From Mobula birostris (lineage: Eukaryota), in assembly GCF_030028105.1 (NCBI RefSeq), contig NC_092374.1, forward strand, positions 176,662,057 through 176,726,056: a DNA stretch of 64,000 bases, in the 5' to 3' direction. Positions 1 to 39,300 of this stretch are shown piece by piece. Each line of letters starts with the position of its first letter. Position 1 is the first letter of the stretch. The notes under the pieces were generated by a model, which was not told the DNA's origin, ran no database searches, and saw only the letters and a list, made by a program, of their open reading frames with translations. The translations under genes were made by a program, and so were the position numbers.

Positions 1-350
1 TAACCCACTATAACAATAAGATGGAGGGTTGAGTAATCCTGTTTGGTGATAGATAGGAAATCCTGAGGCTGATGGAATTATGGCCGGGTGGAGCCAAGTG
101 GAGGAGAGAAAGTTGGAGTATGAAGGTTAAGGTCATTTGGTAATATGTGGAAACAAATGAAGAAGGTAGACTGAATCTCCACATAGGGAAAGGGAGTGGA
201 ACGGTTGAGCTGAAGGCTGATAAGTGACTGACGGAACCAAGTACGCAGGGAATGGCAGACAGTCCAACTCATTGAGGCATTTTGCCGAGTGTTGGTGACA
301 AGGAGGGCTTGTGAACTAAAGCAGCGAGAACCCTTGTAGAATACTGGAGT
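1..350 (-). mobile_element. Old Penelope-like retroelement fragment (region upstream of RT), decayed
   Basis: Pyrimidine-rich minus strand resembles, from memory, the N-terminal part of the chondrichthyan Penelope-like element family also seen at 22.3-23.1 kb. No intact motif. Confidence 0.35.
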
Positions 351-1329
351 CAGGTGAAAACTGCGAGGAGTTGGAAATTCTGAAATTGATAAACTCCATT
401 CAACTGGACGAGATGTGAAAATTGACCGTCTGTTGTGAAAATACTCCTGACTCCCAAATTCGTAAGGACAATTCAGACGATGGAACTTCCAAATTGCTCT
501 CAGAATAAAGAAATTTTACTTTCAATACAGCTGATATCCTATGACTGTCCTTCTGTCCACTGAGTAGGGTCAATTGAAAAACAAGAAGAAAAATTCTTGT
601 TGTCCCTAATTAATTCAGTGCAAATGATACATCCAACCAGGTGAGTTCTTTGAGAGTTTCAGCATTTGGCTATCATACCTTCACTAAAAGTTGCTGGTAC
701 CAGACTCATGATTCCGGATCAGTAAATGCAAGATATCCGTCGTACATGGATTCAGAAAGGAAGTGTTCCGGGCAGAGCACATTAGTTCCAGGGCTTCTTC
801 CGTAATGTCTACTCAATTCTAAGTAGGGTGTTTTCAAATTTCAGTCTTTGGACCTTACTGCTTGGTTAGATATGCCAGTGGCAAATTATAAGTCATGCTT
901 GATCACAACAAAAGATCATTGGTATTTTTATTGGTTATGTTTCTGCTGTAGCTGGTTTTGAATGTCGAAAAATAGACGTTCGTGATGAATTTGTTTAACC
1001 GTTTGCGCGATATGTTCTTTCATTTTCGCATTGGGTTTTTAAAGTTTCTTTTAATGGGTTCAATGTCGTTTCTTTTTGTTTTCCCAAAGCTGTCTTTGGG
1101 AAGACGAATCTCCATGTTGCATACTGCATACATTACGCCAATATTCAGAGTCTTAAACAGTTCTTCGAGGTGAGTCACTACTTCACTTCTGAATCCATTA
1201 GTTCCATGTATTAAAACTTCTGTTCCAAATCGGACTCCTTTGCATCGGTGAGACTCGACGTATAACGGGGTATCACTTTGTTCTACCGCCACAAGTGCTA
1301 AGATCTCCAGATGGGACTATATTTTACAA

Positions 1330-1537
1330 ATATACAGCACATTACAACCTCTCCGGCCTATAATGGTGTGCCGAATATGTAACCTACTCTAGGAACTTTC
1401 TAGAATTACGCTAGAGCATATCCCTCTATATTTCTAAGCTCCATGTACGTATCTAAGAGTCTCTAAACAGACCCTATTGTATCCGCCTACATCACCTTCA
1501 CCAGCAGTACATTTCACGCACCCGCCATTCTCTGTGT
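1330..1537 (-). mobile_element. CR1 LINE 3' end fragment, truncating the GPCR pseudogene
   Basis: Matches the CR1 3' region (ccctctatattttctaagctccatgtac...cacgcacccgccattctctgtgtg) also present at 12.6-12.8 kb in the opposite orientation. Confidence 0.7.
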
Positions 1538-1545
1538 GCAAAACT

Positions 1546-2097
1546 ACCCGTGGCATACTCTCTGTATTGTCAATGCATTTAGCAAGAGGATCAACAAAAA
1601 TAGTTGAAATGGTGTCAATATGGTATCTAACCATAAGAATACAACTCAAGAAGGTAAAGTATAGAAGCTGGGTTCTGCAACACAGAGGCATGGCAAGTTC
1701 CTATTTTTTTCTTATTCTAATGTAGAGAGTATACTGGAGAATTTTCCAAAGAACAAATGAAACAAACTGCTAATATAACCATTCTTGCATTCTTTTTTTT
1801 TCAGTGCAGTATTTTGTTCGTAAAGACTTGCAACAAATTACGACAAATCTAACAAAAGTAAATGCGACAGTTATCCAGACGGAAGTCAATGGAAATACAA
1901 ATCAAGGTCAGATTCAATTTGCAAACAAGTGTGTAATTGTGAAATGAACGTGCAAAACTAAAACACTTATTATCCGATAAATTATTCAGCTATCAAATGC
2001 ATTATATTAGCTGAAGCAGTCCATCCTAGATATTTGTTTATACACCTGGAGAGACCACACTTTCCAGTTGATAATGCTGAGATTGCCGTGGTATTAG
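1546..2097 (-). pseudogene. GPR139-like GPCR pseudogene psi1, exon 2 (TM1 end to TM5), frameshifted and 3' truncated
   Basis: Acceptor ctacag|ctaat at 2098/2097. Frame-hopping translation gives ANTTAISALSTGKCGLSRCINKYL, WITVAFTFVRFVVICCKSLRTKYCTEK (DRF to VRF) and SFYTLPS*VVFLWLDTILTPFQLFLLILLLNALTI, collinear with the intact gene at 7085-7977. Contains stops and frameshifts. Confidence 0.9.
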
Positions 2098-2194
2098 CTG
2101 TAGCCGTAGAGAAAAATGACAAAAATGATGTTACTTTGCAATGACAAAGAAATAAATTGCATTTCAATTACAACGTTTTCGCTTCATTATGGGT

Positions 2195-5100
2195 GAACGC
2201 CGAGAGAGGTGAAGGGAGCAGGAATTCAGTGCAGGGTCCCCTCAACAAAACGTATACCCTTTTGGATACTGCTGTGGGGGATAATCTATCTGGGCAAGGC
2301 AGAGGCAGCCAGACCAATAGAACTGCGGTTGGCTCTGAGCCTCGGAAGGGAAGGGTGAATTCCGGTGGAGCAATAGTCATAGGGGACTCAAAAGCTAGTG
2401 GGCATATAGAAGATTTTGCGTCAGCAAAAGAGACATCAGGAAAGTGTGTTATCTCCTGAATGCTCGGGTCCTGAATGTTTCTGAGCGGTTATGAGAAAGC
2501 GGAATGAAGATCGTTGATCTATACATAGAACTATGATGTTGCGGCCATGACAGATACTTGGATGCTCAGGGGCAGGAATGGCTGCTGAGTGTGCCAGGCT
2601 TCACATGTTTCCAAAACGACAGGGAAGAAGGCAAAAAAAGTGTGCGAGTTGCACTGGAAGTGAGGGATAGAATCACGGCTGCAGAAAAGGAGGAAGTCAT
2701 GGAGGGATTGACAGAAACAGGAAGTGGGCATTAACTCTACGGGGTGTTTTTATAGCACCCCTCCCCAATTGTAACACAGATATCATGGAGCAGATAGGGG
2801 GCAGATTCTGGAACTGTGCAATAATAATAGAGTTGTTGCAATGGGTGATTTAAACTTTCCTAATACTGAATGGCATCTCCTTAGAGCAAGGGGTTTCGTT
2901 AGAGTGGAGTTTGTTAGGTTTGTTCAGGAAGGCTTTCTGACGCATTTTGTAGATAGACAAACGAGAGGAGAGGCTGTACACGATCTGGTATTGGAAAACG
3001 AACCTGGCCAGGTGTCAGATCTCTCGGTGGGAGAGATTTTTGGAAGTAATGATCACAATTCAATCTCCTTTACCTTAGCATTGGAGAAAGACAGGAGCAG
3101 AAATGTTGGGAAACACTTACTTGGGGTCACAGGAAACATGATTAGGTAGGAACTTCGGAACATAAATTGGGAGCAGATGCTCTCAGCGAAATGCACAGCA
3201 GAAATGTGGCAAACGTTCAGGAGGACATTTGCATGATGTTCCGCATAAGTATATTCTAAAAACGAAGAAATACACAAATGGAAAAAAAATAGTACAACCG
3301 TGGCTGTCAAGGGAACTCCAAGCTAATGTAAAAGTAAAAGTGAGGGCATACAACAAAACAAAAACTAGCGGGAAGATGGAGGATTAGGAAGCTTTTAAAA
3401 ACCTATAGACAGCAATTAAAAGAATCATTAGGAGGGAAAAAATGAAATATGAAAGGAAACTAGCAAAACGTATCAAAGTGGATAGTAAAATTTTTCAAAT
3501 ATGTAAAGAAAAAGAGAGGTGAGAGTAGATAAATAGCAACGGGGGACGAGGAAATGACAGGTGCACTAAATGAGTATTTTGCATCAGTTTTCACTGTACG
3601 AGACACTAGAAATGTGCCAGATGTTATACTGCATGAAGGAAGAGAAGTGAGTGCAGTTACTATTATAAGGTGGTGGGTGCTCAAAAAACTGAAAGACTTC
3701 AACGTACTTAAGACATCCGAACCAGATAAAATGCACCCTAGGGTTCTGAAAGAGGTAGCGGTTGAGATCGTGGAGGTATTAGCAATTATCTTTCTAAAAT
3801 CATTCGACTCCAGCCTGGTCACTCCACTCTTTAATAAAGAAGGAAGGCAGCAGAAAGGAAATTATAGACCAGTTAGCCTGATGCAGTGTTTGGGAAGGTG
3901 TTGGAATGAGGTTATGGAGTACTTGGAGACACAGGACAAGATAGTACAAAGGCAGCATTGTTTCCACCAGTGAAAATCCTGCCTGATGAACCTGTTGGAA
4001 TTCTTTAAGGAGATCCCACATAGAACAGATAAAGGGGATATAGTGGATGTTGTATATGTGGACTTTCAGAAGGTTATTGACAAGGTGCCACACGTGAGGT
4101 TGTTTACCATGTTAAGAGCCTATGATATTAAAGGAAAGTCGCTGGCATGGTTAAAGCATTGGATAATTAGGCGGAGCCAGCAAGTCGGAATAAACATATC
4201 CTTTTCTGGCTGGCTGACAGTAACTAGTGGTGTTTCACAGGGGTCTGGGTTGGGAACGTTTTTTTATGCGTAACATCAATGATTTAGACAATGGAATAGA
4301 TGGCTTTGTTGCCAGTTTTGCAGATGTTACGAAGACTGATGGAGGAGCAGATATTGTTGATCACACAGGAAGGCTGCAGAAAGACTTTGAAAGATGAGGA
4401 AAATGGGCAGGCATGTTGCAAATGAAATGTAATGTTTTAAAATGCATGACCATGCTCTTTGGAGGAGAATTAAATGTGCAGTCTATTTTCACAACGGAGA
4501 AAACATCCAAAAATCTGAGGTGCAGAGGGGTTGGTGGGTCCTTGTCTAGAACACCCTAAAGGTAAATTGCACGTTGAGTCGGTGGTAAGGAAAGCATATG
4601 CATTGTTAGCATTCCTTTCAAGAGGTCTTGAATGGAAGAGCAGGGGTGTGATGTTCAGGCTCTATAAGACACAGGTGAAGCCGCACGGTGAGTATTGTGA
4701 ACAGTGTTGGGCTCCTCAGCTGAGAAAAAAATGTGCCGGCATTGGAGAGTTTTCGGAGGTGGTTTCGAAGGATGATTCCGGGAATAAAAGTGTTATTATA
4801 CGAGGAATGCTCGATGGCTCTGGGTCTGTACTCGCTGCAATTTAGAAGGATGATGGACGATGTCATTGAAACCTTTCGAATGTAAAACGGCCTAGACACA
4901 ATAGATGAGAAAAGGATGTTTTCCATGGTGGGGTGTCTAGGACAAGAGGACACATCCTCAGGATAAAGAGCTGTCCATTTAAAAGAGAGGTGTGGAGAAT
5001 TTCATTAGCCAGAGGCTAGTGAATTTGTGGAAATGTGTTAGCAGAGGCAGCTGTGGTGGCCAGATCGTTGGGTATATTTAAGACAGAGATTGTTTGGTTC

Positions 5101-5260
5101 TTGATTTGACATGGTATCAAAGGTTACGGGGGGAAGTCTGTGGAATGGCATTGAGGAGGGGAAACGGACCAGCTATGCTGGAATAGCGGAGTAGATTCGA
5201 TGGGTCCAATGGCCTAATTCTGTTCCTACGTCTGATGGAATTATGGTCTTATTGTCTTTA
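2195..5260 (+). mobile_element. CR1 LINE, decayed (ORF1 esterase remnant, APE endonuclease, RT, 3' tail), in the psi1 intron
   Basis: AIVIGDS esterase motif; MGDLNFP and GSNDHN endonuclease motifs; GNYRPVSL, VYVDFQKVIDKVPH and SGVSQGS RT motifs; ttatggtcttat tail. Confidence 0.9.
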
Positions 5261-5754
5261 TTTTGCTGAAGTTACATACAATATTAAAGTGAAGGTAGTC
5301 CACCACTACATATGTCAAGATGAGGAAGAGTGCACAAAACACCTTAAGCATGCACCGTGTGTCATTTATCATGCATGCTAGATACTGAGTTTACAAGGGT
5401 GTCGATTCTTTCCCAACCACTCTAAACACATCTTATTATGTGTTTGGATGTGTTTGGAGATAATCCCACTCGCCTACGTTTGACTAACTTCTGAAGCTAT
5501 CTTTAAAAATTAATTCATTCATGTTTTTCTTTCTTTTAATAAAATACAAAGTCAGCCCACACCTGTAGCAGACATAAACTACATATTGCATGATCAATAG
5601 CATAAAATGTGTTTTCAACAGGATGTCTTAATTACCAATGTACCAGAACTTTAATGTGAAACATTTTTCAGCTGTTTTCGTTGTTAGTTACTTAGATCAA
5701 CGACTCAACAAATACAAATATATATTATACAGATTGCATACAAGACTGGCTCAC

Positions 5755-5830
5755 CAGGAACACCGATTATTCCTGTTAAGGATAGGATAGTAAATGAGTG
5801 ATAGCATTAACTTTACAGGGCGTTCTACAT
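5755..5830 (-). pseudogene. GPR139-like pseudogene psi1, exon 1
   Basis: ATG at 5830; reads ...IYYPIL then, after a frameshift, IIGVP-G|gtgagc (donor at 5754). In-frame stop at codon 2. Same architecture as exon 1 of the intact genes. Confidence 0.8.
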
Positions 5831-7084: not shown

Positions 7085-7977
7085 TTAGAAAAAAAACACA
7101 AGAGGACTTTTCATTATCTTCTTCATTTCTTCCCTGAAGTTCTTTTGAGAGGCAGCGTAAATAAAGGTGTTGGTGCAAGTACTTAGGAATCGTAACTGGA
7201 AACCAGTTTCTTCTGCAATGGTGAATGGGTCATCGTAATCATATTTCATAAGTTTGTTATCGGTAAAATTAACTGAGATAAAGCAGGCAAAATTTACCAT
7301 CCATAACAGAATGAAGCTACTAGATATTGTGAGAAGTAAAATGACTGATTTCCTTCGGTTTTCCGTCTCTTGATCCATCTGGTTCTTCTCACTTTCGTTT
7401 CCTCGCAGTTTACTTCTGATTCTGTTAGCTCGCATAATGTGCTTTATCGTTAATGCGTTGAACAGAAGGATCAAAACAAATGGCAGAAAAGGAGTTAATA
7501 TTGTCTCCAACCATAAAAAAGCAGCCCAAATAGGTAAGGTATAGAAGGATGATTTTACAATACAGAACCATGATACATTGTCAATTATATCCCGAGGTTC
7601 TAGTAAGAAGTAGACTGGTATATTTTCTATAAAACATAGGAAGGAAACAACTGTTATAACCTTTGTTGCATTTTGTTCTGTGCAATAATTTGTTCGCAAT
7701 GACTGGTAACAAATCGCAACATATCGATCAAACGTAAAAGCTACAGTTAGCCAAACCGACAAATCAATAGCAACATAAATTAGGGCCAGATTAAGACGGC
7801 AAATAGGTGTGTAACTGAGGAATGAGTGTGGAAAAAATGCGTCTTTAATCTCGTAAAATACTGCGCCAAATATGAGATGCGTCAGGTCTCCTACAGCCAT
7901 CCACACCAAATAACGGGTAATGCATCTAGAGAGACCACACCTTCCAGTGGACAGAATAGCGATTGTTAGCACATTAG
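7085..7977 (-). CDS. GPR139/142-like orphan class A GPCR gene 1, exon 2 (of 2; spliced protein 320 aa)
   Basis: Acceptor ttttactgttcacag|CT at 7978/7977, phase 1. Open frame with TM1 end through TM7, GRCGLS in ICL1, TFDRY, Cys in YTPIC and WFC, CTNTFIY in TM7. Stop at 7085. Confidence 0.93.
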
Positions 7978-9275
7978 CTGTGAACAGTAAAAATGGAAAA
8001 AGTATTAAAACGCGTGTAACACCGAAAGGAGTAGAAATATTTTTTTTTCCATTCTTTCGCAACTTGGATTTATTCAACTGTTTCTTTATCCATAGCTCTC
8101 CAAATATATCGAATTAGTTATGACTTCAATAATATGTTTTGAAATGCGCCTTATTGCTCTGAATTTCTACGCAAGATAAGTGAAGTTAGAAAAGGCTACC
8201 TGAGACAGCAACCAGAAGAATGATACAGATGTGTGAAAAAAGTGTTAAATTCATACAATGTTACCGAAAATACAAGAACGACGTCTCCCATTGCAAAGAA
8301 AAACTGGTAGCCTTTTGAGAAAATTCCACAAAAGTGTACAAAAAATTCACATGGATGAGAAAATAACAGCCATGTGATCTGCATAAAATATTAATTATGT
8401 TGTTGCGTATTTTGATATTTCTCTTTCCTTCAAAATTTGAACACGTAGCAGTACTTCTGACACTGATACTTCAATAGTTCTACTGACAATAATTATAAGT
8501 CGAGATTCCAGAATGACGATATAGAACAGGTGATGTAAATGATATCTCTACATTCACAACAGTGAAGCCCCAGTGCCTTGCACTGAAATTGAAGTTTCTT
8601 ATCGATGTCTATCTACCCAGAACATATATCTACGCAAACTCAGCCGCATCTTTACATTAAAGAAGAAGTAAAACCATCACATATCAGTGAAGACATATGT
8701 ACTTTTATTCGTGGACTTAAGTACAGTGTTATAGGAAATAAAATATTTTACTATTGAATTATCATTGAAAGGGTAATTTATGGTTTTCTATCTCCTTTTG
8801 CTCGTTACAACAACGACTGGAAAAGTAGTAAGTTAGGGAACTGAGTTTCGTTCCGGCGCTGGTACCTGCCTGGTCATTCATGCAACTCACATCTAATCGA
8901 CTCTGCTGTAACCGTAGCGGAAGTATGATACTGACAATTAGTAAGAAAAGTGTCGCACTATGTTTTATTTCATTCAGCTGTATGCGCATAAAAAAGCACA
9001 AAGTACCAATTCACATGTTTTAGTATTACCTCGAGTTTATCCAAACAATTGTGATGTGATTGCTCAATGACATGCAAATACAACCAGGAATTAAAATTAT
9101 AATCGATTGCACTTACTTCAAATATAATTTTTTTTTCTTTTGGTTGATTGTAGCAGTACTGTATTTGCACAATCATCTTGACAGTCGCTTGAAATTGTTA
9201 ATATGTGTACGCTGCTGCAATGGCAAGTCAAACAAGAAAGCTTACATAGGTATTACGATCCTATAAGTGACTTAC

Positions 9276-9345
9276 CAGGAACGCCAATCATTATGAGAAT
9301 AGGATAATAAATCCGTTCTATCAGTAAATGTGCATAGAGTCCCAT
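9276..9345 (-). CDS. GPR139/142-like GPCR gene 1, exon 1 (70 nt)
   Basis: MGLYAHLLIERIYYPILIMIGVP-G|gtaagt. Phase 1 joins exon 2 in frame (70+893 = 963 nt). Confidence 0.88.
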
Positions 9346-10234: not shown

Positions 10235-10905
10235 GAGTACATATGATTCTGAGATTCTTTATTTCTGCGGGCATACTTAACTAATCGATAGAACAGTAAC
10301 TGTAACCAGGATCAATAAAAGAGAAACTGCGCAAATGCGAATATAAATAAATAGCAATAGGTAAAAGGATCAAATAACGTGAAATGAAATCGCATGAAAT
10401 ATGAAGATATAGAGTCTTTAAAGTGAGATCTCCGGTTGTGGGAACACCAGAAATAGACAAATTGTAGATATTCCCTTTTGGTCAAGAGCATGGTAGCTGA
10501 AGGGTTGTAACTGTTTTTGAACATTGTGATGCGATTCCTGAAGCACTTGTACATTTTACCTGATGGCAGCAGAGCGAAAAGCGCATAGTCTGGATGTTGT
10601 GGATCTTTCAAGGTGGATGTTGACGTTCTACGGCAACGTTCCATGCAGATCCGCTCCGTGGTTGGGAGTGTTTGACACACGATGTACCGGGCCGAATGCA
10701 GTACCCTTAGTGGGATTTTCCTCTTCAAGGCGTCGGTGTTCTTATACCAGATTATACTACAGCCAGTCAACACAATTTCAATCACATTTCTGCAGAGGTT
10801 TGCCAAGGTTTTCCTTGACATGCCGAATCTCTGCAGACTCCTAAAGAAGTGGCGGCGCTGACGTGCTTCCTTTGTAATTATATGTAAGAAACACTCTCGT
10901 TCTGT
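10235..10905 (-). mobile_element. Rex1/Babar-type LINE 3' fragment
   Basis: RT C-terminus RQRRHFFRSLQRFGMSRKTLANL...LTGCSIIWY...HPDYALFALLPSGKMY in ORF 10312-10974. Confidence 0.8.
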
Positions 10906-11485
10906 TCTTTCCATAACTCTGAGGAAGTCAATCTCTGGCTCAACCAAATGTGTAAGGTGGAGATGCGAGCCCACCCCAAAACTCCTGCGTGATTTGTTAC
11001 CCTATTACCAATCTGTACCACGAAATTAGATAGATAGATAGATAGAAATCTGATTTGTTACCCTATTACCAATCAGTACCACGAAATTACAGACAGTACA
11101 CCACATACAATTAAACGATTTAGCCTTATAATTCTAATTTGACTACAGGATTAATGAAGAAAAAGCAAAAAAGATAAGGGCCCATTTTAATGATGCAGTC
11201 TAACGTGCACAAGTTGGAGCTCACGGTTTCCCATTCGCCGACCCTCTTCCGATCTCCCCAGCCTTTGTCAGATCATTGCTCCGCTTCAGTTCGAGTCCGA
11301 CAGCTTGTTCTCTCCGGCGTCTTCTCTCTTCATCTCCCGCCCAACAAAAGACCCAGGTCACCCCGGTGTCAGGAACACGGCACGAAAGCACACTTCCGTC
11401 ATTGGACGGCTCACATTCCAAGGTACCCGTTATCTATAACCGTAACGTAAACACTGCTTCTACAGAAAAAGCATTAAATTAGCAG
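10905..11485 (-). mobile_element. Solo LTR, family A (Gypsy-type), partial
   Basis: Shares gcgagcccacccc, acagacagtacacc and gtgcacaagttggagctc blocks with the LTRs at 42200-42834 and 44247-44894. Confidence 0.75.
10990..11089. repeat. 39-bp direct duplication flanking a (GATA)n insert
   Basis: 10990-11028 and 11051-11089 match at 38/39 positions, around gatagatagatagatagaaatc. Confidence 0.9.
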
Positions 11486-12830: not shown

Positions 12831-12849
12831 ATGAAAACTTTCCCAGGAT

Positions 12850-23895: not shown

Positions 23896-25227
23896 TGTAT
23901 CACAGTGAGGCGTGGAGAACGGAACCAAATGTAAGACACAGACACTGAAGTACTAGGAACAGGACAGGGATGCAGGACCTGGGCTAGGACATGGACAAGA
24001 AAATGGGAAACTGGACAAGGAACTATGAACTAGGTGCCTAGATTGGGCTCCAAGCCAGAGACTGGAAAAGGACCCAGAACCTGGGTCTTGCCTCAGGCTC
24101 GGGCCCCAGAACCAGGCAAGGACATGACTTAACTACAGGACGGGAGGATGGGGTCTTGAGGCCTGAGCTTGGTGACAGGCTGGGGTCCTGAGGCCTGAGC
24201 TTGGTGACAGGCTGGGGTCCTGAGGCCTGAGCTTGGTGACAGGCTGGGGTCCTGAGGCCTGAGCTTGGTGACAGGCTGGGGTCCTGAGGCCTGAGCTTGG
24301 TGACAGGCTGGGGTCCTGAGGCCTGAGCTTGGTGACAGGCTGGGGTCCTGAGGCCTGAGCTTGGAGACAGGCTGGGGGCTTGCGTCTTGAGGCTGCAGGC
24401 TGGGGGCTTGCGTCTTGAGGCTGCAGGCTGGGGGCTTGGGTCTTGAGACTGCAGGCTGGGGGCTTGGGTCTTGAGGCTGCAGGCTGGGGGCTGGGGCCTT
24501 GGAATGCGGAGGCTGATAACTTGGAGCTGGAACTCGGAGACAGAGTGGGAACTGTACATCAAACATAGAGCCGGGACTTATCTTACGAAAAGCTGGTCTC
24601 CTCTTTAACACGACACCAAGGTGGGACAGGCCCATCCGTCGGGTAACGGCAGAACGGCCGGCCTTACCCAACAGAGGCAAAGACAAGACAAGACAAGACA
24701 GATCCAACCCCCGCCGGGTAACGGCGAAACGGTCTGACTTACCCACGGAGGCGAAGACAAGAAGCTACAAACACCAAGGAACGACAGACAGTTCCATCTC
24801 CACATTGGGGTTGCTCCGGGTCGCAGTTACGGCCAGCAACCTCGGCTGGCTACGGAAACAGCTGGATCCCTACCTAGCTCGGAGTGGGTGACGGCCAGTC
24901 AACTGGCCCAGGAAACGGACGAATCCATACCGCAAACACACCTCCGACTACTGATAGCAGGGCTCCATGAGGCGATGGTTACCGACGCAGCCTAAAGATG
25001 GCAAGTCACCGCTCTAGCCTTCCACCGGCAGGTTGCTCCCAGGGAATCTTGACAAGGCAAACCAGCAGCCCACACCCGACCCCAAGGCAACTTATTTTCC
25101 AAGCCATGGGAATCAGGTGCTTATGATTAACCCAACCAAAACAAAGAACAGCTGGAAGACCCGGAGTCCTGAGTCCACGGACCGGACCGTGAACCGGAAT
25201 GCGGACATCACGGACCGGACCATGGCA
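23896..25227 (-). mobile_element. Solo LTR, family B (Gypsy-type), containing a minisatellite
   Basis: TG...CA termini (tgtatcac...ccatggca) with gta immediately on both sides (possible agta TSD). Minus-strand start tgccatggtccggtccgtg. No pol sequence. Confidence 0.6.
24158..24492. repeat. Compound G-rich minisatellite: 7 x 32 bp followed by 4 x 28 bp
   Basis: gaggcctgagcttggtgacaggctggggtcct x6 plus one variant (24158-24380), then tg(c/g)gtcttgag(g/a)ctgcaggctgggggct x4 (24381-24492). Confidence 0.95.
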
Positions 25228-26208: not shown

Positions 26209-27131
26209 CTAAACAACCACACAATGCTCCCATAAGTTACCAGTACAGAAAAAAAGTACATATTTTATCTTATTCTTCAATTCCTCCCTAAACTTTTTCT
26301 GAGATATTGCATAAATGAAGGTGTTTGTACACGCGCTCAGGCACCGTAACATGTAGCCAGAATTTTCTGCAATTGCGAAAGAGTTGAACGTATCTCTTTT
26401 CATAAACTGGGTGTCTGTAAACTGTACGTAAATGAAACATGCCAGATTTACCAACCATAAGAGAACAAAATTGGCAGATATTGCAATTAGGAGAATAATC
26501 GATTTCCTTCTGTTACCAGATTCTTGATCATTCTGACAACTCTCCTTGTTGCTTGCTCGTAGTTTGCTTCTGACTCTGTTGGACATTACAATGTTCTTTA
26601 TGGTTATAGAATTAAGAATAATAATGGACAGATACGGTGTAAATGGGGTTATTGCTGTTTCTATCCATAAGTACGCAATCCAGGAGGGTCTGGTGTAGAA
26701 ACTTGCTTTCATGAAACATGACCATGGCATCTGGTTAATTATACGCCGAGGTTCAAATATAAAATAAATCGGAATATTTTGTATGATGCCGAAAATAAAC
26801 ACGATTGCTATAACCTTCGATGCATTCTTGGGAGTACAATATTTTGTTCGTAATGACTGACAGGAAATAGAAATAAATCGATCAAATGTGAAAGCGACAG
26901 TTAACCATACAGAAAAATCAAGAGAAATATACATCATTTGTATAATGAGACTACAAATAGGCGTGTAATTGAGGAACGAATATGGAAAATACGCTTCTTT
27001 CAGTTCATTCAACATTACATTACTTGTCAAAACCATTAGGTCAGCTACTGCCATCCATACCAGGTACATGATGATGCATCTGGAGAGACCGCATTTTCCA
27101 GATGTCAGGATGACAATTGCAACCAAATTAG
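26209..27131 (-). CDS. GPR139/142-like orphan class A GPCR gene 2, exon 2 (spliced protein 330 aa)
   Basis: Acceptor ttttcttttttggcag|CT at 27132/27131, phase 1. Open frame with GKCGLS, TFDRF, YTPIC and WSC cysteines, CTNTFIY. Confidence 0.93.
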
Positions 27132-28794
27132 CTGCCAAAAAAGAAAATATATTACTTTAGCAACGCAAATCAGTCGAGAATCTACTGCGTTCGGTTGTCA
27201 TAATTTTTCGCCAGTGTTTATTTTTAATTTTTACCGATTCAGTGCTAATGAATTAACTTCAACAATATTGAAACAATATTGAAAAATGATGGCTAATATA
27301 TTCTCATATTTTGTTCTAGAACCGAAATTCATAATTGGCTGTGCGGTGTACTTAAGAAAACAACAAAACGTGGAAAAATCATTTTCGTAGCAAATGTTAA
27401 AGATTTGTTCTCCATCTCTACCCCCGCAATCGATATTGTCAACATTTTCTTCGATTTAAGAAGTCCCAGTTTGCTGTGTTCCCGTCTGTCTAAACATACT
27501 GTATTTAACCAGGCTTAGAGACATCCATTTTCTTTTAACAGTGTTGGAATTTATTTTAAAAACCTGATTGCATCGCACTTTGTCTCCAGTGTTACACCAA
27601 ATTTGATATCAGAAATCCACTGCCATCAATTATTTCTGAATAAAAGCAATGCAGTTTTGAATGGACTGAGTGGTTATCTTTTGAAATACATTGGTTTCCA
27701 GTCTCGAAGGGGAATGTGTACTTTAATGTATTACCAAAAAGTGAATACAATATCCTGACATCTTAATATTTATTCAACTATCGTCCCCGTGAATCTGTTA
27801 CATTCTGATAAATATTTACAGGAAGTGGCTCAAATCACTTAGCAAATATGAATATACGTGAAAAACCTTCCTTCATGTGATCCCCATATACATTTATTTT
27901 GTATATATTAAAACGCAATTATAGTTAGAATGTCGCAATTCCACAGTTTGTTAAACTTATCACCTAGTTGGAAGTTTTCGTTGTATCTGACCGGTTAAGC
28001 TTGTGTTACTATTTTTTTTCAAATAGTAATGCAATGTAAATCTATCCGGTATCACAAAGTTGTTTTGAGTAATAGCTCAGGTTTCATCAAATTGAAAATA
28101 TTAGTTACTGCCAGGTGTATGCGTTAATCAGCTGCATTGCATGATTAAGATCGAACGTATTGAGTATTAAAATGAAAGAGGAATCACCGCCTTACAGGTT
28201 AGTTTCTACCATGACTTCGGAAATTGAAATTAGAAACTCACCTTAACGCTACGCACAATAATTAGTTAGGCACGGGATATTGACTTTCCCATAGGCAGAA
28301 AGTATTCACTGGCGTGTAAAGAAAACACGAAAAATGTACGAAATACTGCAGTCTTAAATCAATCCTTCATTTGAAGCGTGAAATCCGCCCTTCATAGAGC
28401 AGACTCTTATTTGGTAGGAGCGGAAACATGTTGCAGTTTGGACATGAATAAAATGAAATACATCATTTCGCCCGTTCATAAATACTTTCACATGTTTTCA
28501 TTTTGCTCTGTCAATGCAGTGTTTAAACTACCTAGAAACGATATTAATCAAATATCGCTGTGATGATTGTACGTTCTAGTGTCAATTGTTTGGCGACAAT
28601 TAAGTATAAAGTATAAAGTACTACCGAACCATTTACTCTTTGATGATAGCCAGTCAATGTAATTTATATATCGGAATGGCGTTAGCTGTAGCATTCCAAA
28701 GGAATTGAAAAACTCTTTTTCATCGACAGTTTTGTCGTTGATTGATACTGTCGAAAGTGATGCATGTTAAAATACATTTTTATAAACAACTTAC

Positions 28795-28864
28795 CTGGAA
28801 TCCCAATTGCGCCAAGCATTGGATAGTAAATTGCTTTTATCTGTTGGATTATATGTTTGTCCAT
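28795..28864 (-). CDS. GPR139/142-like GPCR gene 2, exon 1 (70 nt; alternative ATG 6 nt upstream)
   Basis: MDKHIIQQIKAIYYPMLGAIGIP-G|gtaagt. 70+923 = 993 nt, in frame. Confidence 0.88.
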
Positions 28865-30000: not shown

Positions 30001-30906
30001 CCGATCCGCAGTGCCAAAAAGGTTGGGGACCCCTGTCATAGCTGATTAAGTTTAAGTTCAAGAATAATTGTCATTCAACCATACGTGAGTACATATATGA
30101 GGATCATGTGCAATGTTAGTTTTGTAATTTCCAGTGAGGAATAGATATGTAATCAGATTAAGGGAATAAATAAAATAATACGGTTGTTGTCAAGGGCGAT
30201 TTCATATGCGGTACTTTAAATTCGTTTTGTCCAGCAGCGTTTGTTAAATTGCGTTTAACAAAGACTTATTGTTTACTAAAGACATTTGGCTGCCCCCACT
30301 ACCTCCAATCGCACAGTCATCTTACTGGAAGATTATTATCCCTCTCAACCCCATTTTCCTGCTTTTTTTCGACGGAGCATTTGACGCTCTTACTATTCAT
30401 GAAACCTCCGCTTTCAGTATATCCAACGACTTACCATCCACAGCCGTTTGTGTGAATAAATTTCATGGTTTTCTCCCTTTTGGCTAAAGAAATTTCTCTT
30501 TATTTTTGTTCTAAGTGAATGTCCCCCAATTCTCGGCCTGTGTCCGGTGGTCCGAATACTCCTCCACTATAAGACTCATTCTCTCTCCATCCTCTCATTC
30601 ACTTTACGATAGGTTTCAATGAGATTGCCCACCCCATTCTTCTGAGGTCCCGCGAGTACAGGCCCAGAGACAGAAAATGGTCCTCATATGTTAACCCATT
30701 CATTCCCGCAATCATTCTCATAAGCTGCTGTAGACACCTTCCAATGTCAGCACATTTTTCCTAATAAATTTAAGTGACCATTCTGCTAATTTGACGATGT
30801 CTGTCTGCAGAATCTCTGCTTCCTCAACACTACCTGCTGTGCCACCTATCTTCGGATCATCGGGAAACTTGGTAATAAAGCCACAATGCTAGCATCCAAA
30901 TTATTA

Positions 30907-33900
30907 CATAGAAAACATGGAAAACGTAGAAAATAGGTGCAGGAGTAGGCCATTCGGCCCTTCGAGCCTGCATCGCCATTCAGTATGATCATGGCTGATC
31001 ATCCAATTCAGAACCCTGTACCAGCCTTCCCCCCATACCCCCGATCTCTTTAGCCACAAGGGCAATATCTAACTCCCTCTTAAATATAGCCAATGAACTG
31101 GCCTCAACTGTTTCCTGTGGCAGAGATTTCCACAGATTCACCTCTCTCTGTGCGAAGAGGTTTTTCCTAATCTCGGTCCTAAAAGGCTTCCCCTTTATCC
31201 TCAAACTGTGACCCCTCGTTCTGGACTTCCCCAACATCGGGAACAATCTTCCTGCATCTAGCCTGTCCAATCCCTTTAGGATTTCATACGTTTCAATAAG
31301 ATCCCCCGTCACATCTTCTAAATTCCAACGAGTATACGCCTAGTTGATCCAGTCTTTCCTCATATGAAAGTCCTGCCATCCCAGGATTCAATCTGCTGAA
31401 CCTTCTTTGTACTCCCTCTATGGCAAGGATGTCTTTCCTCAGATTAGGGGACCAAAACTGCACACAATACTCCAGGTGTGGTCTCACCAAGGCCTTGTAC
31501 AACTGCAGTAGTACCTCCCTGCTCCTGTACTCGAATCCTCTTGCTATAAATGCCAGCATACCATTCGCCTTTTTCACTGCCTGCTGTATCTGCAGGCCCA
31601 CTTTCAATGACTGATGTATAAGGACACCCAGGTCTCGTTGCATCTCCACTTTTCCTAATTGGCCACCATTCACATAATAATCTGTTTTCCTGTTTTTGCC
31701 ACCAAAGTGAATAACCTCACATTCATCCACATTAAATTGCATCTGTCATGACTTTGCCCACTCATCTAACCTATCCAAGTCACCCTGCATCCTCTTAGCA
31801 TCCTCCTCACAGCTAACACTGCCACCCAGCTTCGTGTCATCCGCAAACTTGGAGATGCTGCATTTAATTCCCTCATCTAAGTCATTAATATATATTGTAA
31901 ACAACTGGGGTCCCAGCACTGAGCCTTGCGGTACCCCACTAGTTACTGCCTGCCATTCTGAAAAGGTCCCTTTTATTCCCACCCTTTGCTTCCTGTCTGC
32001 CAACCAATTCTCTATCCACATCAATACCTTACCCCCAATACCGTGTGCTTTAAGTTTGCACACTAATCTCCTGTGTGGGGCCTTGTCAAAAGCCTTTTGA
32101 AAATCCAAATATAACACATCCACTGGTTCTCCCCTATCCACTCTACTACTTACATCCTCAAAAAATTCTATGAGATTCGTCAGACATGATTTTCCTTTCA
32201 CAAATCCATGCTGACTTTGTCCGATCATTTCACCGCTTTCCAAATGTGCTGTTATCACATCTTTGATAACTGACGCTAGCATTTTCCCCACCACCGATGT
32301 TAGGCTAACCAGTCTATAATTCCCCGGTTTCTCTCTCCCTCCTTTTTTAAAAAGTAGGGTTACATTAGTCACCGTCCAATCCTCAGGAACTAGTCCAGAA
32401 TCTACAGAGTTTTGAAAAATTATCACTAATGCATCCACTATTTCTTGGGCTACCTCCTTAAACACTCTGGGATGCAGACCATCTGGCCTTGGGGATTTAT
32501 CTGCCTTTAATCCCTTCAATTTTCCTAACACCACTTACCTACTAAATGTATTTCCCTCAGTTCCTCCATCTCACTGGACCCTCTGTCCCCTACTATTTCC
32601 GGAAAATTGTTTATGTCCTCCTTATTGAAGACAGAACCAAAGTAGTTATTCAATTGGTCTGCCATATCCTTGCTCCCCATAATCAATTCACCTGTTCCTG
32701 TTTGTCAGGGACCTACATTTGTCTTTACCAATCTTTTTCTTTTCACATATCTATAAAAGCTTTTACAGTCAGTTTTTATGTTCCCTGCCAGTTTTCTCTC
32801 ATAATCCTTTTTCCCTTTCCTAATTAAGCCCTTTGTCCTCCTCTGCTGGACTCTGAATTTCTCCCAGTCCTCAGGTGAGCCACTTTTTCTGGCTAATTTG
32901 TATGTTTCTTCTTTGGAATTGATACTATCCCTAATTTCCCTTGTCAGCCACGGGTGCACTACCTTCACTGATTTATTCTTTTGCCAAGCTGGGATAAACA
33001 ATTGTTGTAGTTCATCCATGCGATCTTTAAATGCTTGCCATTGCATAACCACCGTCAACCCTTTAAGTGTCATTTGCCAGTCTATCTTAGCTAATTCACG
33101 TCTCATACCTTCAAAGTTACCCTTCTTTAAGTTCAGAACCTTGGTTTCTGAATTAATGATGTCACTCTCCATCTTAATGAAGAATTCCACCATATTATGG
33201 TCACTCTTACCCAAGGGGCCTCTCACGACAAGATTGCTAATTAACCCTTCCTCATTGCTCAATACCCAGTCTAGAATAGCCTGCTCTCTAGTTGGTTCCT
33301 CAACATGTTGGTTCAAAAAACCATCCCACATACATTCCAAGAAATCCTCTTCCTCAGGACCCTTACCAATTTGGTTCACCCAATCTATATGGAGATTGAA
33401 GTCACCCATTATGACTGCTGTTCCTTTATTGCACGCATTTCTAATTTCCTGTTTAATACCACCCCCAACCTCACTACTACTGTTAGGTGGCCTGTACACA
33501 ACTCCCACCGGAGTTTTCTGCCCCTTAGTGTTATGCAGCTCTACCCATACCAATTCCACATCCTCCCGGCTAATGTCCTGCCTTTCTATTGCGTTAATCT
33601 CCTCTCTAACCAGCAATACTACCCCATCTCCTTTTCTTTCATGTCTATCCCTCCTGAATATTGAATATCCCTGAATGTTGAGCTCCCAACCTTGGTCACC
33701 CTGGAGCCATGTCTCTGTGATCCCAACTATATCATATTCATTAATAACAATCTGCACTTTTAATTCATCCACCTTGTTACGAATGCTCCTTGCATTGACA
33801 CACAAAGCCTTCAGGCTCGCTTTTACAACACTCTTAGCCCTTATACAATTATGTTGAAAAGTTGCCCTTTTTGATTTTTGCCCTGGATTTGCCGGCCTGC

Positions 33901-34926
33901 CACTTTTACTTTTCACCTTACTACTTTTTGCTTCTACCCTCATTCTACACCCCTCTGTCTCTCTGCACTTGTTCCCATCCCCCTGTTGTGAATTAACCTC
34001 CTCTCTCCTAGCCTCTTTAATTTCATTCCCACCCGCCAACCATTCTAGTTTAAAGTCACCTCAGTAGCCCTCGCAAATCTCCCCGCCAGGATATTGGTCC
34101 CCTAGGATTCAAGTATAACCCGTCCTTTTTGTACAGGTCACACCTGCACCAAAAGAGGTCCCAATGATCCAAAAACTTGAATCCTTGCCCCCTGCTCCAA
34201 TCCCTCAGCCACGCATTTATCCTTCATCTCATTACATTCCTACTCTCACTGTCGCGTGGCACAGGCAGTAATCCCGAGATTACTAATTTTGCGGTCCGTT
34301 TTGTCAACTCCCTTCCTAACTCCCTGTATTCTCCTTTCAGGACCTCTTCCCTTTTCCTACCTATGTCATTGTTACCTATATGTACCACGACCTCTGGCTC
34401 CTTACCCTCCCACTTCAGGATATCTTGAACGCGATCAGAAATATCCCGGACCCTGGCATCATGGAGGCAAACTACCATCCGGGTCTCTGGACCGCGTCCA
34501 CAGAATCGCCTATCTGACCCCCTTACTATCGAGTCCCCTATTACAACTGCCCTCATCTTCCTTTCCCCACCCTTCTGAGCTACTGGGCCGGACTCTGTGC
34601 CGGAGGCACGGCCACTGTCGCTTGCCACAGGTAAGCCGTCCCTCCCAACAGTACTCAAACAGGAGTACCTATTGTCAGGGGGCCAGCCACCGGGATACTC
34701 TCTATTACCTGACTCTTCCCCTTCCCTCTCCTAACCGTGACCCACTTGTCTGCCTCCCGTGGCCCCGAAGTGACCACCTGCCTGTAACTCCTCTCTATCA
34801 ACTCCTCACTCTCCCTGACCAGACGAAGGTCATCGAGCTGCAGCTGCAGTTCCCTAACGCGGTCCCTCAGGAGTTGCATCTCGGCGCACCTGGCGCAGAT
34901 GTGGTCGTCCGGGAGGCTTGGAGACA
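30907..34926 (-). mobile_element. Young, near full-length CR1 LINE (5' truncated ORF1 with zinc-finger remnant and SGNH esterase; ORF2 APE plus RT broken by a few frameshifts)
   Basis: ORFs 34655-34927 (CARC..LRDRVRELQ), 34224-34658 (VVIGDSIVRG, VHIGNND), 32705-34039 (ITETW, MGDFN, SDH), 31746-32534 (FQKAFD, QGSVLGP, FADD), 31293-31742, 30989-31312. ttctat-like tail. Confidence 0.95.
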
Positions 34927-35010
34927 TATTACGTGAAAAGAAGCGGTCTGTACACCAAGCTCTGAGGAATATAACTCGTCACAGTCAGGCAACCAGAGAG
35001 CTTGTTCATA

Positions 35011-35080
35011 ATGTTGCTTCCTCGTTTACTGATTCGGTAGAAGTTTTACTGCTCGATTTTTGCGCATTTTGAACCATCTG
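35011..35080 (+). pseudogene. GPR139-like pseudogene psi3, exon 1
   Basis: Exactly 70 nt: MLLPRLLIR*KFYCSIFAHFEPS-G, positionally matching M..LLI..IYYPIL..IGVP-G. In-frame stop and degraded donor. Confidence 0.55.
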
Positions 35081-35556
35081 GGTAGTTTTAACGTTGGACT
35101 GCGGTACTGAACAAGAGCATTTGCAACAAGAAGAGTATTTTCGTTTCATTAAAAATAACAGGCAGTTGGCTATTAATTCTAACAAACGGAGTGATGTTCG
35201 GGAAGTGTTCCAGAGAAGTTGATGTTAACATCGCAATACTGTACTTTATACTTTTCTAAAGTCATGATTATAAATTAGCAGCCAATCCTCAATAAGATGG
35301 CAGATCATTGAATCGCCAGCGAGAATGCTGACTATTTGGCAATATTGCCTGAGTTTGATACATGGATTTATCTTCATGCAAATTAAAGTGACCGCCAAGT
35401 GAAATTGGCCGCTGACAATCGTTGAATCCACTTTTGACATAAATGAATTTCTTCCCTTATACAAATAAAAGAATGTTAAACGAAGTATGAAGGGCTTAGA
35501 CTAAAAGCTTTAAATGAAGGTTTGACTGAGGTATTTATTCTTGTGTATTCAAACAG

Positions 35557-37215
35557 TCAATTTATGATTTTCTGCATTTACAGATAGTCTTCGGCAATTG
35601 TTATTCTATCTCGTGGGAAGCGCAGTCATTCAAAATGCATCACTCATTATCATTCGTCGGCTGTGCAAATCCAGGGAACACAATGTCTGGCCCCGCCAAA
35701 CCTGTAAGATTGAGGCACGAGCCCACCCCAAAAACCCCTGTTCGTGTGGATGCTGCCTGATTCGTTACCCTGTTACAGATAAGTATCACAAAATAACAGA
35801 CAGTACACCCCACACAATTTTTTTTTTTAAAAAAAGCTTTATACTTCTTAATTTGACTAAAGGTTTAGTAACGAAAGAACAAAACAAGAAAAGGGCCCAT
35901 TTGAATGAAACAGTCTAATGTGTACAAATTGGAGTTCACGGTTTCACTTCGCCGATCCTCCTTCAATCTCAGCCCGGGCTTCGTCGAATCACAGCCCCGC
36001 TCCGGGTCGAACCCTACGACCTCTTCTCCCGGGCGTCTTCTCTCTTCATCTCCATAACAAAAGCCCCAAAACCAACCTTAAATTCTTCTATCTCTTATCT
36101 TCAACAGTAACCCAAACAGGCAGCTTGCACTGAACAGCACAAATTAAATACAGAGTAGCATAACAGTAACGAAATATGAACCAGGGCATTACAGTTGCAA
36201 TGGCTGTGGAAGATCGACTGGTGATAACAACACTTGCTGTAATATTATATGAGGTGAATGATGTTATGTTTTGTAAGTTCAAAACATTAAACTAATTCAA
36301 AGGAAGACAAAGGAGTACGAAAAAAGTGGGTGCAGCTTCGTCTTTAAGTGGTTCCCTCGTATATCCGGTAATAGCGTGATGACGTATGCAATTAATGTAT
36401 TTATACATATAATCCATAATGAATTATTTAAACGAACAGGAAAGTTTAATCCACCACGATATACTCGAGATTACGCAAGAATAACTAAAATATTAAATAC
36501 ACAACAAATAGCGTGTTTTCCATGTGCAGCCTCAAGATCACTATTTTTTTCAGCCTTAGATTGCTCCATGTGATCGATTGATTACCATTTGTTGACAGAA
36601 CCTGAGAACACTCTACAGTATTACGCTGAGGAAACTGCAGCTGTGGTTATAATGATTAAAGTTGGATTTAGTTTCGTACAAAATATGCCAATTAACTTTG
36701 AAAATGAACACTTGGGAACTTATTCGCAATGCTCTCTGGTTTTGCAAAGAGGTCTCATCCGTATAGTTTACCAACATAGATTGCATACTTTCTTTTAGAC
36801 ATCGCCTTAACAACTTTTGAGCCATTTTCATTGGCTGTGCTCTTTAATGCTCTGACCATCCAGCATATATTATGGGGCAATAAGCTCAGAAAGTGACATG
36901 AGGAGACAGAATTAGGTAAGCTTGCAATGGTCCACAGTATATGAACCGCAGGAATTCGATGATATTACTTCTCTCTATCTCTAGCTGTTTTACTCTGTTT
37001 TGGCTGGTAACATCTATGCAGAATTTCCAGAGATTTAGGGTACGCTCACAGATTGTAATGATTTAATCGATATCATGGAACATATTGTGCATATGCTTCA
37101 GTGTCTCAGTTCGTATACGGATTTACTTTAAGTGATGGCTCGGGTTAAATTGAGAAAAAAAAACATTGGTGAAAGCTATTAAAAACCCCTTCAATTTATT
37201 TTTCAAACCGTGGGA
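35557..37215 (+). pseudogene. GPR139-like pseudogene psi3, exon 2, interrupted by a solo LTR and a ~225-bp insert
   Basis: aaacag|TC AAT TTA (VNL); AIVILSRGKRSHSKCITHY | LTR | VAMAVEDRLVITTLAVILYEV; PMCSL..ALDCSM; DRLITIC*QNLRT; QNMPI; ALWFC; LFNALTIQHI; NRRNSMILLLSISSCFTLFWLV; HMLQCLSSYT. Confidence 0.9.
35652..36193 (-). mobile_element. Solo LTR, family A, inserted in the psi3 coding exon
   Basis: Shares blocks with the 42.2/44.2-kb LTRs and ends cagggcattaca. GPCR codons stop at TAT C and resume at GTT GCA ATG. Confidence 0.85.
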
Positions 37216-37364
37216 ATAAAGTTGAAGTAGAACGTAATCCATCTTCAGATTTGAGATCGAGTCTCATTAATGATATTTCAGTACAAATTCTTTCTCACGT
37301 GTTCATAATGAAATTGTTTCAACAAAGCTAATACAGATACAGAATTGGGACTTTTTAAAATTAT

Positions 37365-37635
37365 CTGTAGGGCATTTCAGAAGTAGTTAAATAGGCATCC
37401 GTTAGTCTCATGAGACCATGGATTTGCGCCTTCGAAGGTTTCCCCGGCAGTTGCCTATGCTGCGAGTCTCCCCTCTCCACGCCACCGATGTTGTCTAAGG
37501 GAAGGGCACCGGTGTCATTGCAGAGCAATGTGTGGTTAACTGCCTTGCTCAAGGACACAACACGCTGCCTCAGCTGAGGCTTGAATTAGCGACTGTCAGA
37601 TCACTAGACCGACGCCTTATCCAGCTGGCCACGTG
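37365..37635 (-). mobile_element. tRNA-derived SINE with CORE-like centre and LINE-type tail
   Basis: Minus strand: A/B-box-like head cacgtggccagctggataaggcg...attcaagcc, then gtgttgtgtccttgagcaaggca, ending catgagactaacggatgcc. Confidence 0.7.
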
Positions 37636-37721
37636 AAGTAGTTATCAGCGCATTATTTCATGTTGAAATCCCATCTATAGGGACTGTAGCAATGGGCGTC
37701 GCAAATTTCATGCTGTCAAAA

Positions 37722-37796
37722 TTGACTCTATTTAAACGACGTCAGTAAGCATAATATTTTCATTATGCTTACTGACGTCACACTTAAAATAGTCAA
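37722..37796. repeat. Palindrome: perfect 18-bp arms, 6-nt loop, imperfect extension; contains a CRE-type TGACGTCA
   Basis: gacgtcagtaagcataat (37738-37755) and attatgcttactgacgtc (37762-37779). Outer ttgact...agtcaa. Confidence 0.85.
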
Positions 37797-38144
37797 ACAC
37801 AACTGAAAAACTTTCCGTCTATCCTGTCACAAAAAAAAGTACAGGATGCTGCCAAAGGGTCTCAGCCCGAAAAGGCGACTGCATTTTTTCCCATAGATGC
37901 TGCCTGGCCTGCTTAAGTCCTCCGGTATTGCCATGTACCCTGCTCCTACTCCTGTTCTCTTTCTCTTCTCAACCAAAACCATCGTGATAAAGGGTTAAAC
38001 AAGTTAAATGATGAACACCATTACAATCTCAAGCTGGTGTCAATGCATTTTATAAAATATCTTTGCCAGAGCATAGAATATAGACCATAGAATATCAATC
38101 TTCCATCTTCTTATTTAAATAAAAGAGCTTTCAGATTTTTTCCT

Positions 38145-39300
38145 CAGGGTTCCACATGCTACGCTTATTCAGAAAGACAGAAGGCATGGGATCCAGGGAA
38201 GTTTGGCCAGGTGGATTCAGAATTGGCTTGCCTGTAGAAGGCAGAAGGTCATGGTGGAGGGAGTACATTCAGATTGGAGGATTGTGACTAGTGATGTCCC
38301 GCAAGGATCTGTTCTGGGACATCTACTTTTCGTGATTTTTATTAACGACCTGGATGTTGGGGTAGAAGGGTGGGTTGGCAAGTTTGCAAATGACACAAAG
38401 GTTGGTGGTGTTGTAGATAGTGTAGAGGATTGTTGTAGACTGCAGAGAGACATTGATAGGATGCAGAAATGGGCTGAGAAGTGACAGATGGCATTCAACC
38501 CAGAGAAGTGTGAGGTGGTACACTTTGGACAGACAAACTCCAAGGCAGAGTACAAAGTAAATGGAAGGATACTTGGTACTGTGGAGGAGTAGAAGGATAT
38601 GGGGGTACATGTCAACAGATCCCTGAAAGTTTCCTCACAGGTAGATAGGGTAGTTAAGAAAGCTTATGGGGTGTTAGCTTTCATAAGTCGAGGGACAGAG
38701 CTTAAGAGTTGCGATGTAATGATGCAGCTCTATAAAACTCTGGTTGGGCCACACTCTGAGTGCTGTGTCCAGTTCTGGTCACCTCATTATAGGAAGGATG
38801 TGGAAGCATTGGAAAGGGTACAGAGGAGATTTACCAGGATGCTGCCTCGTTTAGACTGTATGGATTATGATCGGAGATTAAGGAAGCTAGGGCTTTACTC
38901 TTTGGAAAGGAGGAGGATGAGTGGAGACATGATAGAGGTGTACAAGATAATAAGAGGAATAGATAGAGTGGATAGCCAGCTTTTCTCCAGGGCACCACTG
39001 CTCAATACAAGAGGACATGGCTCTAAGGCAAGGGGTTGGAAGTTCAAGGGGGATATTAGAGGAAGGTTGTTTTTTTTTAATATATATATAATATTATACT
39101 CAGAGTGGTTGGTGCATGGAACGCACTGCCTGAGTCAGTGGTGGAGGCAAATGCACTAGTGAAGTTCAAGAGACTATGAGACAGGTATATGGAGGAATTT
39201 AAGGTGGGGGGGGGTAATATGAGAGGCAGTGTTTGAGGGTCGGCACAGCATTGTGGGTTGAAGGGCCTGTAATGTGCTGTGCTGTTGTTCTATGTTCTAT
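38145..39300 (+). mobile_element. Young 5' truncated CR1 (RT C-terminus and 3' tail)
   Basis: ORFs 38203-38484 ([16 protein letters not shown]) and 38599-39159; (gttctat)n tail. Confidence 0.92.

Follow-up and report, generated by a model that had tools for sequence, protein, structure and literature searches.

In apes, segmental duplications, lineage-specific insertions and pericentromeric extension domains are hypomethylated in sperm and form so-called CpG reservoirs (Son et al. 2026 preprint, PMC13308097). In cold-blooded vertebrates, non-methylated islands reach a ratio of observed to expected CpG (o/e) near 0.6–1.0 via germline protection and are not necessarily GC-rich (Long et al. 2013, PMC3583005). 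Methylation in the sea squirt is mosaic, with unmethylated CpG-rich stretches carrying tissue-specific genes beside methylated CpG-poor ones; elephant shark liver is pervasively methylated, with a window distribution broader than in mouse or zebrafish (PMC5437953). Here we analyse a 64-kb stretch of the Mobula birostris genome (64,000 nucleotides, contig NC_092374.1 of assembly GCF_030028105.1, positions 176,662,057 to 176,726,056; hereafter the window), whose left ~38 kb carry genes for GPR139-like class A G-protein-coupled receptors (GPCRs) and retain CpG, whereas the adjoining DNA on the right is depleted. A preliminary description of this stretch had proposed that the receptor cluster stayed hypomethylated in the germline over long evolutionary time.

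The ape reservoirs are the closest precedent, as they are likewise multi-kilobase, lie outside CpG islands, involve duplicated gene families and keep CpG through low germline methylation. However, they are described as transient and linked to young sequence and have had their methylation measured directly, whereas the ray domain is old (57% identical paralogues, decayed fragments), recurs in skates and has a methylation state that we infer; with such paralogues and single-copy read depth it does not qualify as young or recently duplicated. In mammals, clusters of olfactory-receptor and similar silent, tissue-specific genes are covered by long partially methylated domains with rather sharp borders and a GC content that is ordinary or low; to our knowledge, most of these domains are somatic or persist only transiently in germ cells, and they leave no marked CpG excess in the genome. 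The ray domain resembles them in spanning tens of kilobases (1 to ~38.0 kb, open leftward), in its distinct border and in its receptor array, but leaves an evolutionary CpG footprint, which the mammalian domains are not known to do. Its two GPR139-like genes and two fragments correspond to the silent, tissue-specific clustered genes of such domains, absence from RNA runs being weak evidence here: receptor 1 is missing from all listed runs, but these carry no tissue labels, and silence cannot be read from its absence. CpG islands and non-methylated islands measure ~1–3 kb and lie at promoters. The ray domain reaches the island threshold of o/e ≥ about 0.6 (0.62 overall, 0.79–0.89 around genes); unlike short (about 0.2–3 kb), usually GC-rich promoter islands, it extends for at least 38 kb across genes with their introns, pseudogenes and intergenic DNA, at a GC of 0.404, equal to that of its flank. 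The juxtaposition of CpG-rich and CpG-poor stretches recalls the sea squirt, but the surroundings in ray and skate are depleted as in other vertebrates. Polycomb-type methylation valleys or canyons hold conserved developmental regulators, whereas the ray domain holds lineage-specific receptors, pseudogenes and long interspersed nuclear elements (LINEs). The ray domain combines length, ordinary GC and age with conservation over a receptor array in cartilaginous fishes, and would appear to be a new form of the known footprints of germline hypomethylation; in the literature searched, neither an expansion of GPR139-like genes in sharks nor CpG-rich receptor domains of cartilaginous fishes were described.

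To describe the step, CpG o/e, GC content, GpC o/e and TpG+CpA o/e were computed along the window. Positions 1–38000 contain 959 CpGs (o/e 0.62) and positions 38001–60900 contain 176 (o/e 0.19). CpG is thus about threefold more retained in the receptor domain. The step is specific to CpG, because neither GC (0.404 left and right) nor GpC o/e (0.97 left, 0.98 right) changes across it. TpG+CpA o/e shifts in the opposite direction (1.18 left, 1.31 right); divided by CpG o/e, it gives a crude index of CpG decay, which rises from 1.9 left of the step to 7.0 right of it. The 2-kb windows of the two sides scarcely overlap (median o/e 0.66 vs 0.19, Mann–Whitney p = 5e-6), and the gap between left and right is present in each GC bin (0.78/0.16, 0.62/0.21 and 0.55/0.22). 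A binomial change-point scan identified 37880 as the position of a single dominant step, with a gain in log-likelihood of 167; recursive segmentation sets this step at 38350. These data confirm that the CpG step between the receptor domain and its flank is real. The segments and the two domains are as follows:

1–30560: segment with CpG o/e 0.65 and GC 0.397
30561–34250: segment with CpG o/e 0.34 and GC 0.437
34251–38350: segment with CpG o/e 0.72 and GC 0.423
38351–60920: segment with CpG o/e 0.19 and GC 0.403
60921–64000: segment with CpG o/e 0.64 and GC 0.514
1–37980, no strand: CpG-retaining domain, running off the left end of the window, o/e 0.62 overall and 0.70 without LINE pieces
39251–60900, no strand: ordinary CpG-depleted DNA (o/e 0.19) containing LINE fragments as well as exons from a major histocompatibility complex (MHC) class I-like gene

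The scan bears out the step noted in the preliminary description and gives it as a drop from 0.62 to 0.19 near 37.9–38.35 kb. Its hand counts of 26, 19, 3 and 1 CpG per 720 nt proved exact (o/e 1.11, 0.76, 0.13 and 0.05), but the ~30 CpGs expected per 720 nt were set too high, the computed expectation being about 21–25. Calling the domain AT-rich does not discriminate it from its flank, both having the same GC, and 'no CpG depletion' holds only as a strong contrast with the right side: depletion is relaxed rather than absent (0.62 overall, about 0.4–0.65 in LINE parts and 0.34 in a young LINE). Values of 0.79–0.89 are confined to three blocks totalling ~12 kb. Two of them (6.5–11.5 and 26.5–30.5 kb) correspond to intact receptor genes with their introns and upstream DNA, and the third (35–38 kb) to a receptor fragment adjoining the boundary. 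The enrichment extends over introns, intergenic DNA and pseudogene fragments.

The left side contains two intact-looking genes and two fragments of GPR139-like receptors:

1556–2206, minus strand: degraded GPR139-like receptor fragment (pseudogene), found by tblastn
7085–8010, minus strand: main coding exon of GPR139-like receptor 1 (7tm_1), CpG o/e 0.77
9274–9345, minus strand: first coding exon of receptor 1, starting MGLYAHLLIERIYYP, matched by 31 homologue N-termini
26209–27140, minus strand: main coding exon of GPR139-like receptor 2, found by protein similarity
28787–28864, minus strand: first coding exon of receptor 2, starting MDKHIIQQIKAIYYP, matched by 42 homologue N-termini
36572–37009, plus strand: degraded GPR139-like fragment, closest of the receptor remnants to the boundary, found by protein similarity search

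At the protein level, receptors 1 and 2 are 57% identical. Database searching gave 627 matches to the family at E <= 0.001; among the best 120 of these, the named sources are all sharks and rays, with a top identity of only 66–75%. The gene structure is conserved in the family (two exons, the first encoding ~24–26 residues), and dozens of such genes are found per chromosome in Heterodontus, Heptranchias and Rhinoraja. The GPR139-like family is greatly expanded in sharks and rays, and the expanded family is a candidate for a chemosensory role.

At its right end the domain meets a repeat:

37912–39251, plus strand: CR1-like LINE fragment on the boundary, very high-copy, o/e 0.19, with reverse transcriptase-like similarity at 38125–39093

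Unique and repeated stretches near this element were called by word depth from read contigs. The stretches 36404–37416 and 37556–37912 are unique and CpG-rich, the latter with 14 CpGs in 357 bp, and 39251–41000 is unique and CpG-depleted (o/e 0.13). The transition therefore takes place within no more than 1.35 kb, a stretch filled by the CR1-like LINE. The domain had been described as ending sharply at a CR1 element at 39.3 kb; the step does lie at the left edge of the CR1-like element (about 37.9–38.35 kb), but the domain ends at ~38.0 kb, because the element itself is CpG-poor. The step within ≤1.35 kb agrees with a sharp boundary, the sharpness being inseparable from the LINE that sits on it. 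A search for a CTCF-type consensus (CCASYAGRKGGCR, ≤1 mismatch) gave four matches, none of them less than 20 kb from the boundary and with no excess over chance.

Repeats allow the same kind of sequence to be compared on both sides of the step. In non-LINE DNA o/e is 0.70 on the left and 0.20 on the right, and in LINE-derived DNA it is 0.42 and 0.17, respectively. Three elements are of particular relevance:

10312–10974, minus strand: LINE-tail open reading frame (ORF), CpG-rich, 24 CpGs, o/e 0.79
30561–34250, minus strand: CpG-poor pocket formed by a young LINE with long endonuclease and reverse transcriptase ORFs, o/e 0.34
49800–50445, minus strand: right-side relative of the LINE-tail ORF, CpG-poor, 5 CpGs, o/e 0.16

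LINE fragments of like decay (33–47% protein identity to the same references) have an o/e of 0.46–0.65 on the left and 0.11–0.22 on the right, the ranges being disjoint. Fragments of similar decay thus hold 2–3 times more CpG inside the domain; the preliminary description had suggested comparing repeats in this way. In 19 left–right repeat alignments, 79 sites carry CG on the left and TG or CA on the right, as compared to 23 sites with the reverse. The pair that had served as internal control behaves accordingly, with 14 CpGs (o/e 0.69) at 10463–10850 against three (0.15) at 49864–50231, and with CG on the left and TG or CA on the right at six sites and the reverse at one; the name Rex1/Babar given to the LINE-tail copy could not be confirmed. 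That CpG was kept even over old transposons is correct insofar as old LINE pieces are richer than those on the right, but LINE pieces of the domain taken together remain well below its non-LINE DNA (0.42 vs 0.70). The young LINE, whose similarity span reaches from 31067 to 34622 on the minus strand (o/e 0.38), is the youngest element and also has the lowest CpG on the left side. The simple view that young repeats are CpG-rich therefore fails to explain the domain; if anything, longer residence within it goes along with more CpG. Between repeats of the same side, the ratio of CpG to non-CpG transitions is 2.3 for left–left and 3.2 for right–right pairs, and in the best pairs ~2.6 on the left (76% identical) and 7 on the right (85.6% identical). 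These ratios are used only as a hint, because the comparisons are saturated and part of the change is older than insertion.

Some further observations concern these repeats. The young LINE shares 83–90% protein identity with LINE proteins of Hypanus sabinus and Leucoraja erinacea and only 56–73% with those of sharks, which may reflect either very slow evolution of this lineage in batoids or exchange among batoids. The LINE-tail ORFs at 10312–10974 and 50092–50445, both on the minus strand, resemble Pfam ALKBH8_N (PF09004) weakly to moderately (E 0.007 and 4e-8), and this Pfam family may rest partly on LINE-derived sequence. Within the CpG-rich domain lies a minisatellite (24145–24501) of 32- and 28-bp units with a GC of about 0.63 and a CpG o/e of 0.09. 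In the depleted domain, 51673–52604 consists of two tandem copies of a 465-bp unit that are 99.8% identical.

Relaxed CpG depletion is also seen at the same receptor family in other cartilaginous fishes. Here, a locus comprised the gene and 10 kb on each side, and random little-skate loci found via LINE gene models served as controls:

Leucoraja erinacea, two GPR139-like loci: CpG o/e 0.58 and 0.71
Rhinoraja longicauda, three GPR139-like loci: CpG o/e 0.64, 0.65 and 0.71 (the last over 34 kb)
Heptranchias perlo, one GPR139-like locus: CpG o/e 0.49
Leucoraja erinacea, four random control loci: CpG o/e 0.31, 0.44, 0.34 and 0.45

In Leucoraja, the median o/e of 2-kb windows is 0.68 at receptor loci as compared to 0.37 in controls (p = 2.5e-6), and non-LINE DNA has 0.71–0.77 and 0.32–0.51, respectively. 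Other clusters of the family, which had been named as a place to look, are thus likewise relaxed in the skates Leucoraja and Rhinoraja, against depleted Leucoraja controls. This recurrence indicates that the state belongs to GPR139-like arrays and is not an accident of one junction.

Comparisons of closely related sequences bear on whether CpGs of the domain currently mutate faster than other positions. A sister-species contig covers 36409–37416 at 4.1% divergence, with 35 of the 41 differences listed, and an 885-bp interior was scored. Transitions occurred there at one of 42 CpG positions and at 20 of the 843 remaining ones, which gives an odds ratio of 1.0, and CpG-creating transitions in the sister species were not found among the listed differences. 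The probability of seeing at most one CpG transition would be 0.04 at a 5-fold excess of CpG decay, 0.0075 at 7-fold, the value suggested by right-side composition, and 0.0005 at 10-fold. Two 22-kb Rhinoraja copies (99.6–99.8% identical) differ by transitions at one of 1468 CpG positions and 13 of 21243 others. These Rhinoraja longicauda receptor loci lie 7.3 Mb apart on CM130181.1 (34.03 and 41.32 Mb) and either arose by very recent duplication or are one haplotype that the assembly contains twice. As far as such alignments tell, the evidence leans, although not cleanly, towards weak or no CpG hypermutability at receptor loci.

We consider it probable that long-standing low germline methylation of the receptor array explains the retained CpG. 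The GPR139-like array would lie in a chromatin domain that has long been unmethylated or weakly methylated in the germline, so that its CpGs would have been spared loss by deamination of 5-methylcytosine. Non-repeat DNA of the domain would be near an unmethylated equilibrium (o/e 0.7–1.0). LINE insertions would arrive CpG-poor and might in addition be methylated individually, giving intermediate values, and the flank with the MHC class I-like gene would be methylated by default and depleted to 0.19. The germline hypomethylation proposed at the outset is supported in part, by the apparent lack of CpG hypermutability against the sister species, the LINE contrast and the recurrence in skates. Several points weigh against it. 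The methylation state itself, and with it the germline cell type concerned and the determinant of the boundary, is inferred from sequence. In skates, LINE fragments are barely CpG-richer in receptor loci than in controls (0.42 vs 0.32); control loci come from Leucoraja only, and the background of the M. birostris genome is known from just 23 kb. The sister-species test spans only ~1 kb with 21–23 CpGs, all on the left side, and six of the 41 differences are unlisted, near contig ends that hold just two CpGs. A 3.27-kb internal Rhinoraja duplicate shows CpG-biased change (4 of 226 CpG vs 4 of 3041 other positions). Finally, a transition of ≤1.35 kb that coincides with a LINE also fits a structural junction.

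Such a junction is part of a different explanation, by which the array would be a transient CpG reservoir, young and structurally dynamic, whose CpGs have not yet eroded, and the boundary would be the edge of a rearrangement or duplication at the LINE. Recent duplications in apes, like their lineage-specific insertions, are indeed CpG-rich and hypomethylated in sperm (PMC13308097), and the fast turnover of the receptor family, with intact genes beside fragments, the 99.3–99.8% identity of Rhinoraja duplicates and the narrow step at a LINE would all suit a young array. However, the receptors share just 57% identity, no recent internal duplication is present in the domain (nothing more than 77% similar except the minisatellite at about 24.1–24.5 kb), and its unique parts are single-copy by read depth. 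Moreover, decayed receptor fragments and old LINE pieces hold more CpG than the young LINE, and the CpG-rich state is common to skates and M. birostris, with CpGs that at present appear not to be hypermutable. We therefore regard a transient reservoir as unlikely; it would also require low germline methylation, and differs from long-standing hypomethylation chiefly in duration.

We consider it improbable that something other than methylation is the cause, such as local differences in repair or replication timing, CpG-restoring biased gene conversion or selection acting on CpG. GC and GpC are equal on both sides, so that no GC-biased process is visible, and GC-biased conversion was rejected on this ground. 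CpG-creating transitions are lacking among the listed differences from the sister species, and the effect spans introns, intergenic DNA and pseudogene fragments alike.

Even less probable is an assembly join that brought two unrelated regions together at a repeat. It is true that no read contig crosses 37416–39251, where contigs break at the very high-copy repeat. Yet source-sample contigs match both sides near-perfectly, with 0–2 differences and a unique-sequence depth of about 9–11 on each, and the sister species possesses both sides as well, at 4.1% (left) and 3.0% (right) divergence and depths of about 11–15 each. Equal depth and presence in the sister species disfavour contamination, collapsed copies and hemizygosity; copy-number collapse was rejected, both sides having equal single-copy depth. 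In addition, a little-skate gene model (P0053) fuses MHC class I alpha1–alpha2 to a GPR139-like receptor, and both gene kinds are therefore neighbours in skates, too. A join could account for the adjacency but not for the left-side state; the alternative offered in the preliminary description, misassembly or rearrangement, fails for that state, which recurs at family loci of other species. At window position 36770, the assembly has A where source-sample and sister-species contigs have G, so that the site is either heterozygous or an error of the consensus.

Some large DNA viruses encode GPCRs, but a large integrated GPCR-carrying element with an unmethylated history is scarcely credible here, as the genes have two exons, belong to a host family with hundreds of database matches, are interspersed with host LINEs, show normal depth and have an orthologue in the sister species, and as no viral hallmark domain was found among the ORFs searched against Pfam.

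Beyond the step, the flank contains the following features:

57767–58114, minus strand: immunoglobulin C1-set exon (MHC class I alpha3-like) in the depleted domain, PF07654, E 1.7e-17
55246–55356, minus strand: possible downstream exon of the MHC class I-like gene
60921–64000, no strand: GC-rich, CpG-island-like block beyond the depleted domain, GC 0.51–0.56, o/e 0.64–0.73

The little-skate fusion model suggests conserved linkage between the GPR139-like family and MHC class I genes. For ORFs of the block at 60921–64000, neither a Pfam match nor a coding match was found; the block may serve as promoter for the MHC class I-like gene or for some gene that is not yet recognised. No RNA genes were detected in the window by Rfam or tRNA scans.

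Jawed vertebrates are taken to methylate nearly everywhere save short promoter islands, and elephant shark liver agrees with this (PMC5437953). The locus described here raises a broader idea, plausible but short of probable, namely that sharks, rays and skates may have kept large, stable germline-unmethylated compartments over lineage-specific receptor arrays since before the divergence of rays and skates, with only transposon insertions being methylated. If true, this would introduce a mosaic component into an otherwise globally methylated vertebrate genome. The proposed long-standing hypomethylation yields a clear prediction for sperm and oocyte methylomes and for substitution spectra of species pairs, and CpG o/e offers a sequence-only route to map germline epigenetic compartments in species that lack a methylome. 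Cartilaginous fishes would then possess entire gene arrays that can evade germline methylation over very long times, which would lower the CpG mutation load in these arrays and might shape silencing and expression choice of fast-evolving receptors.

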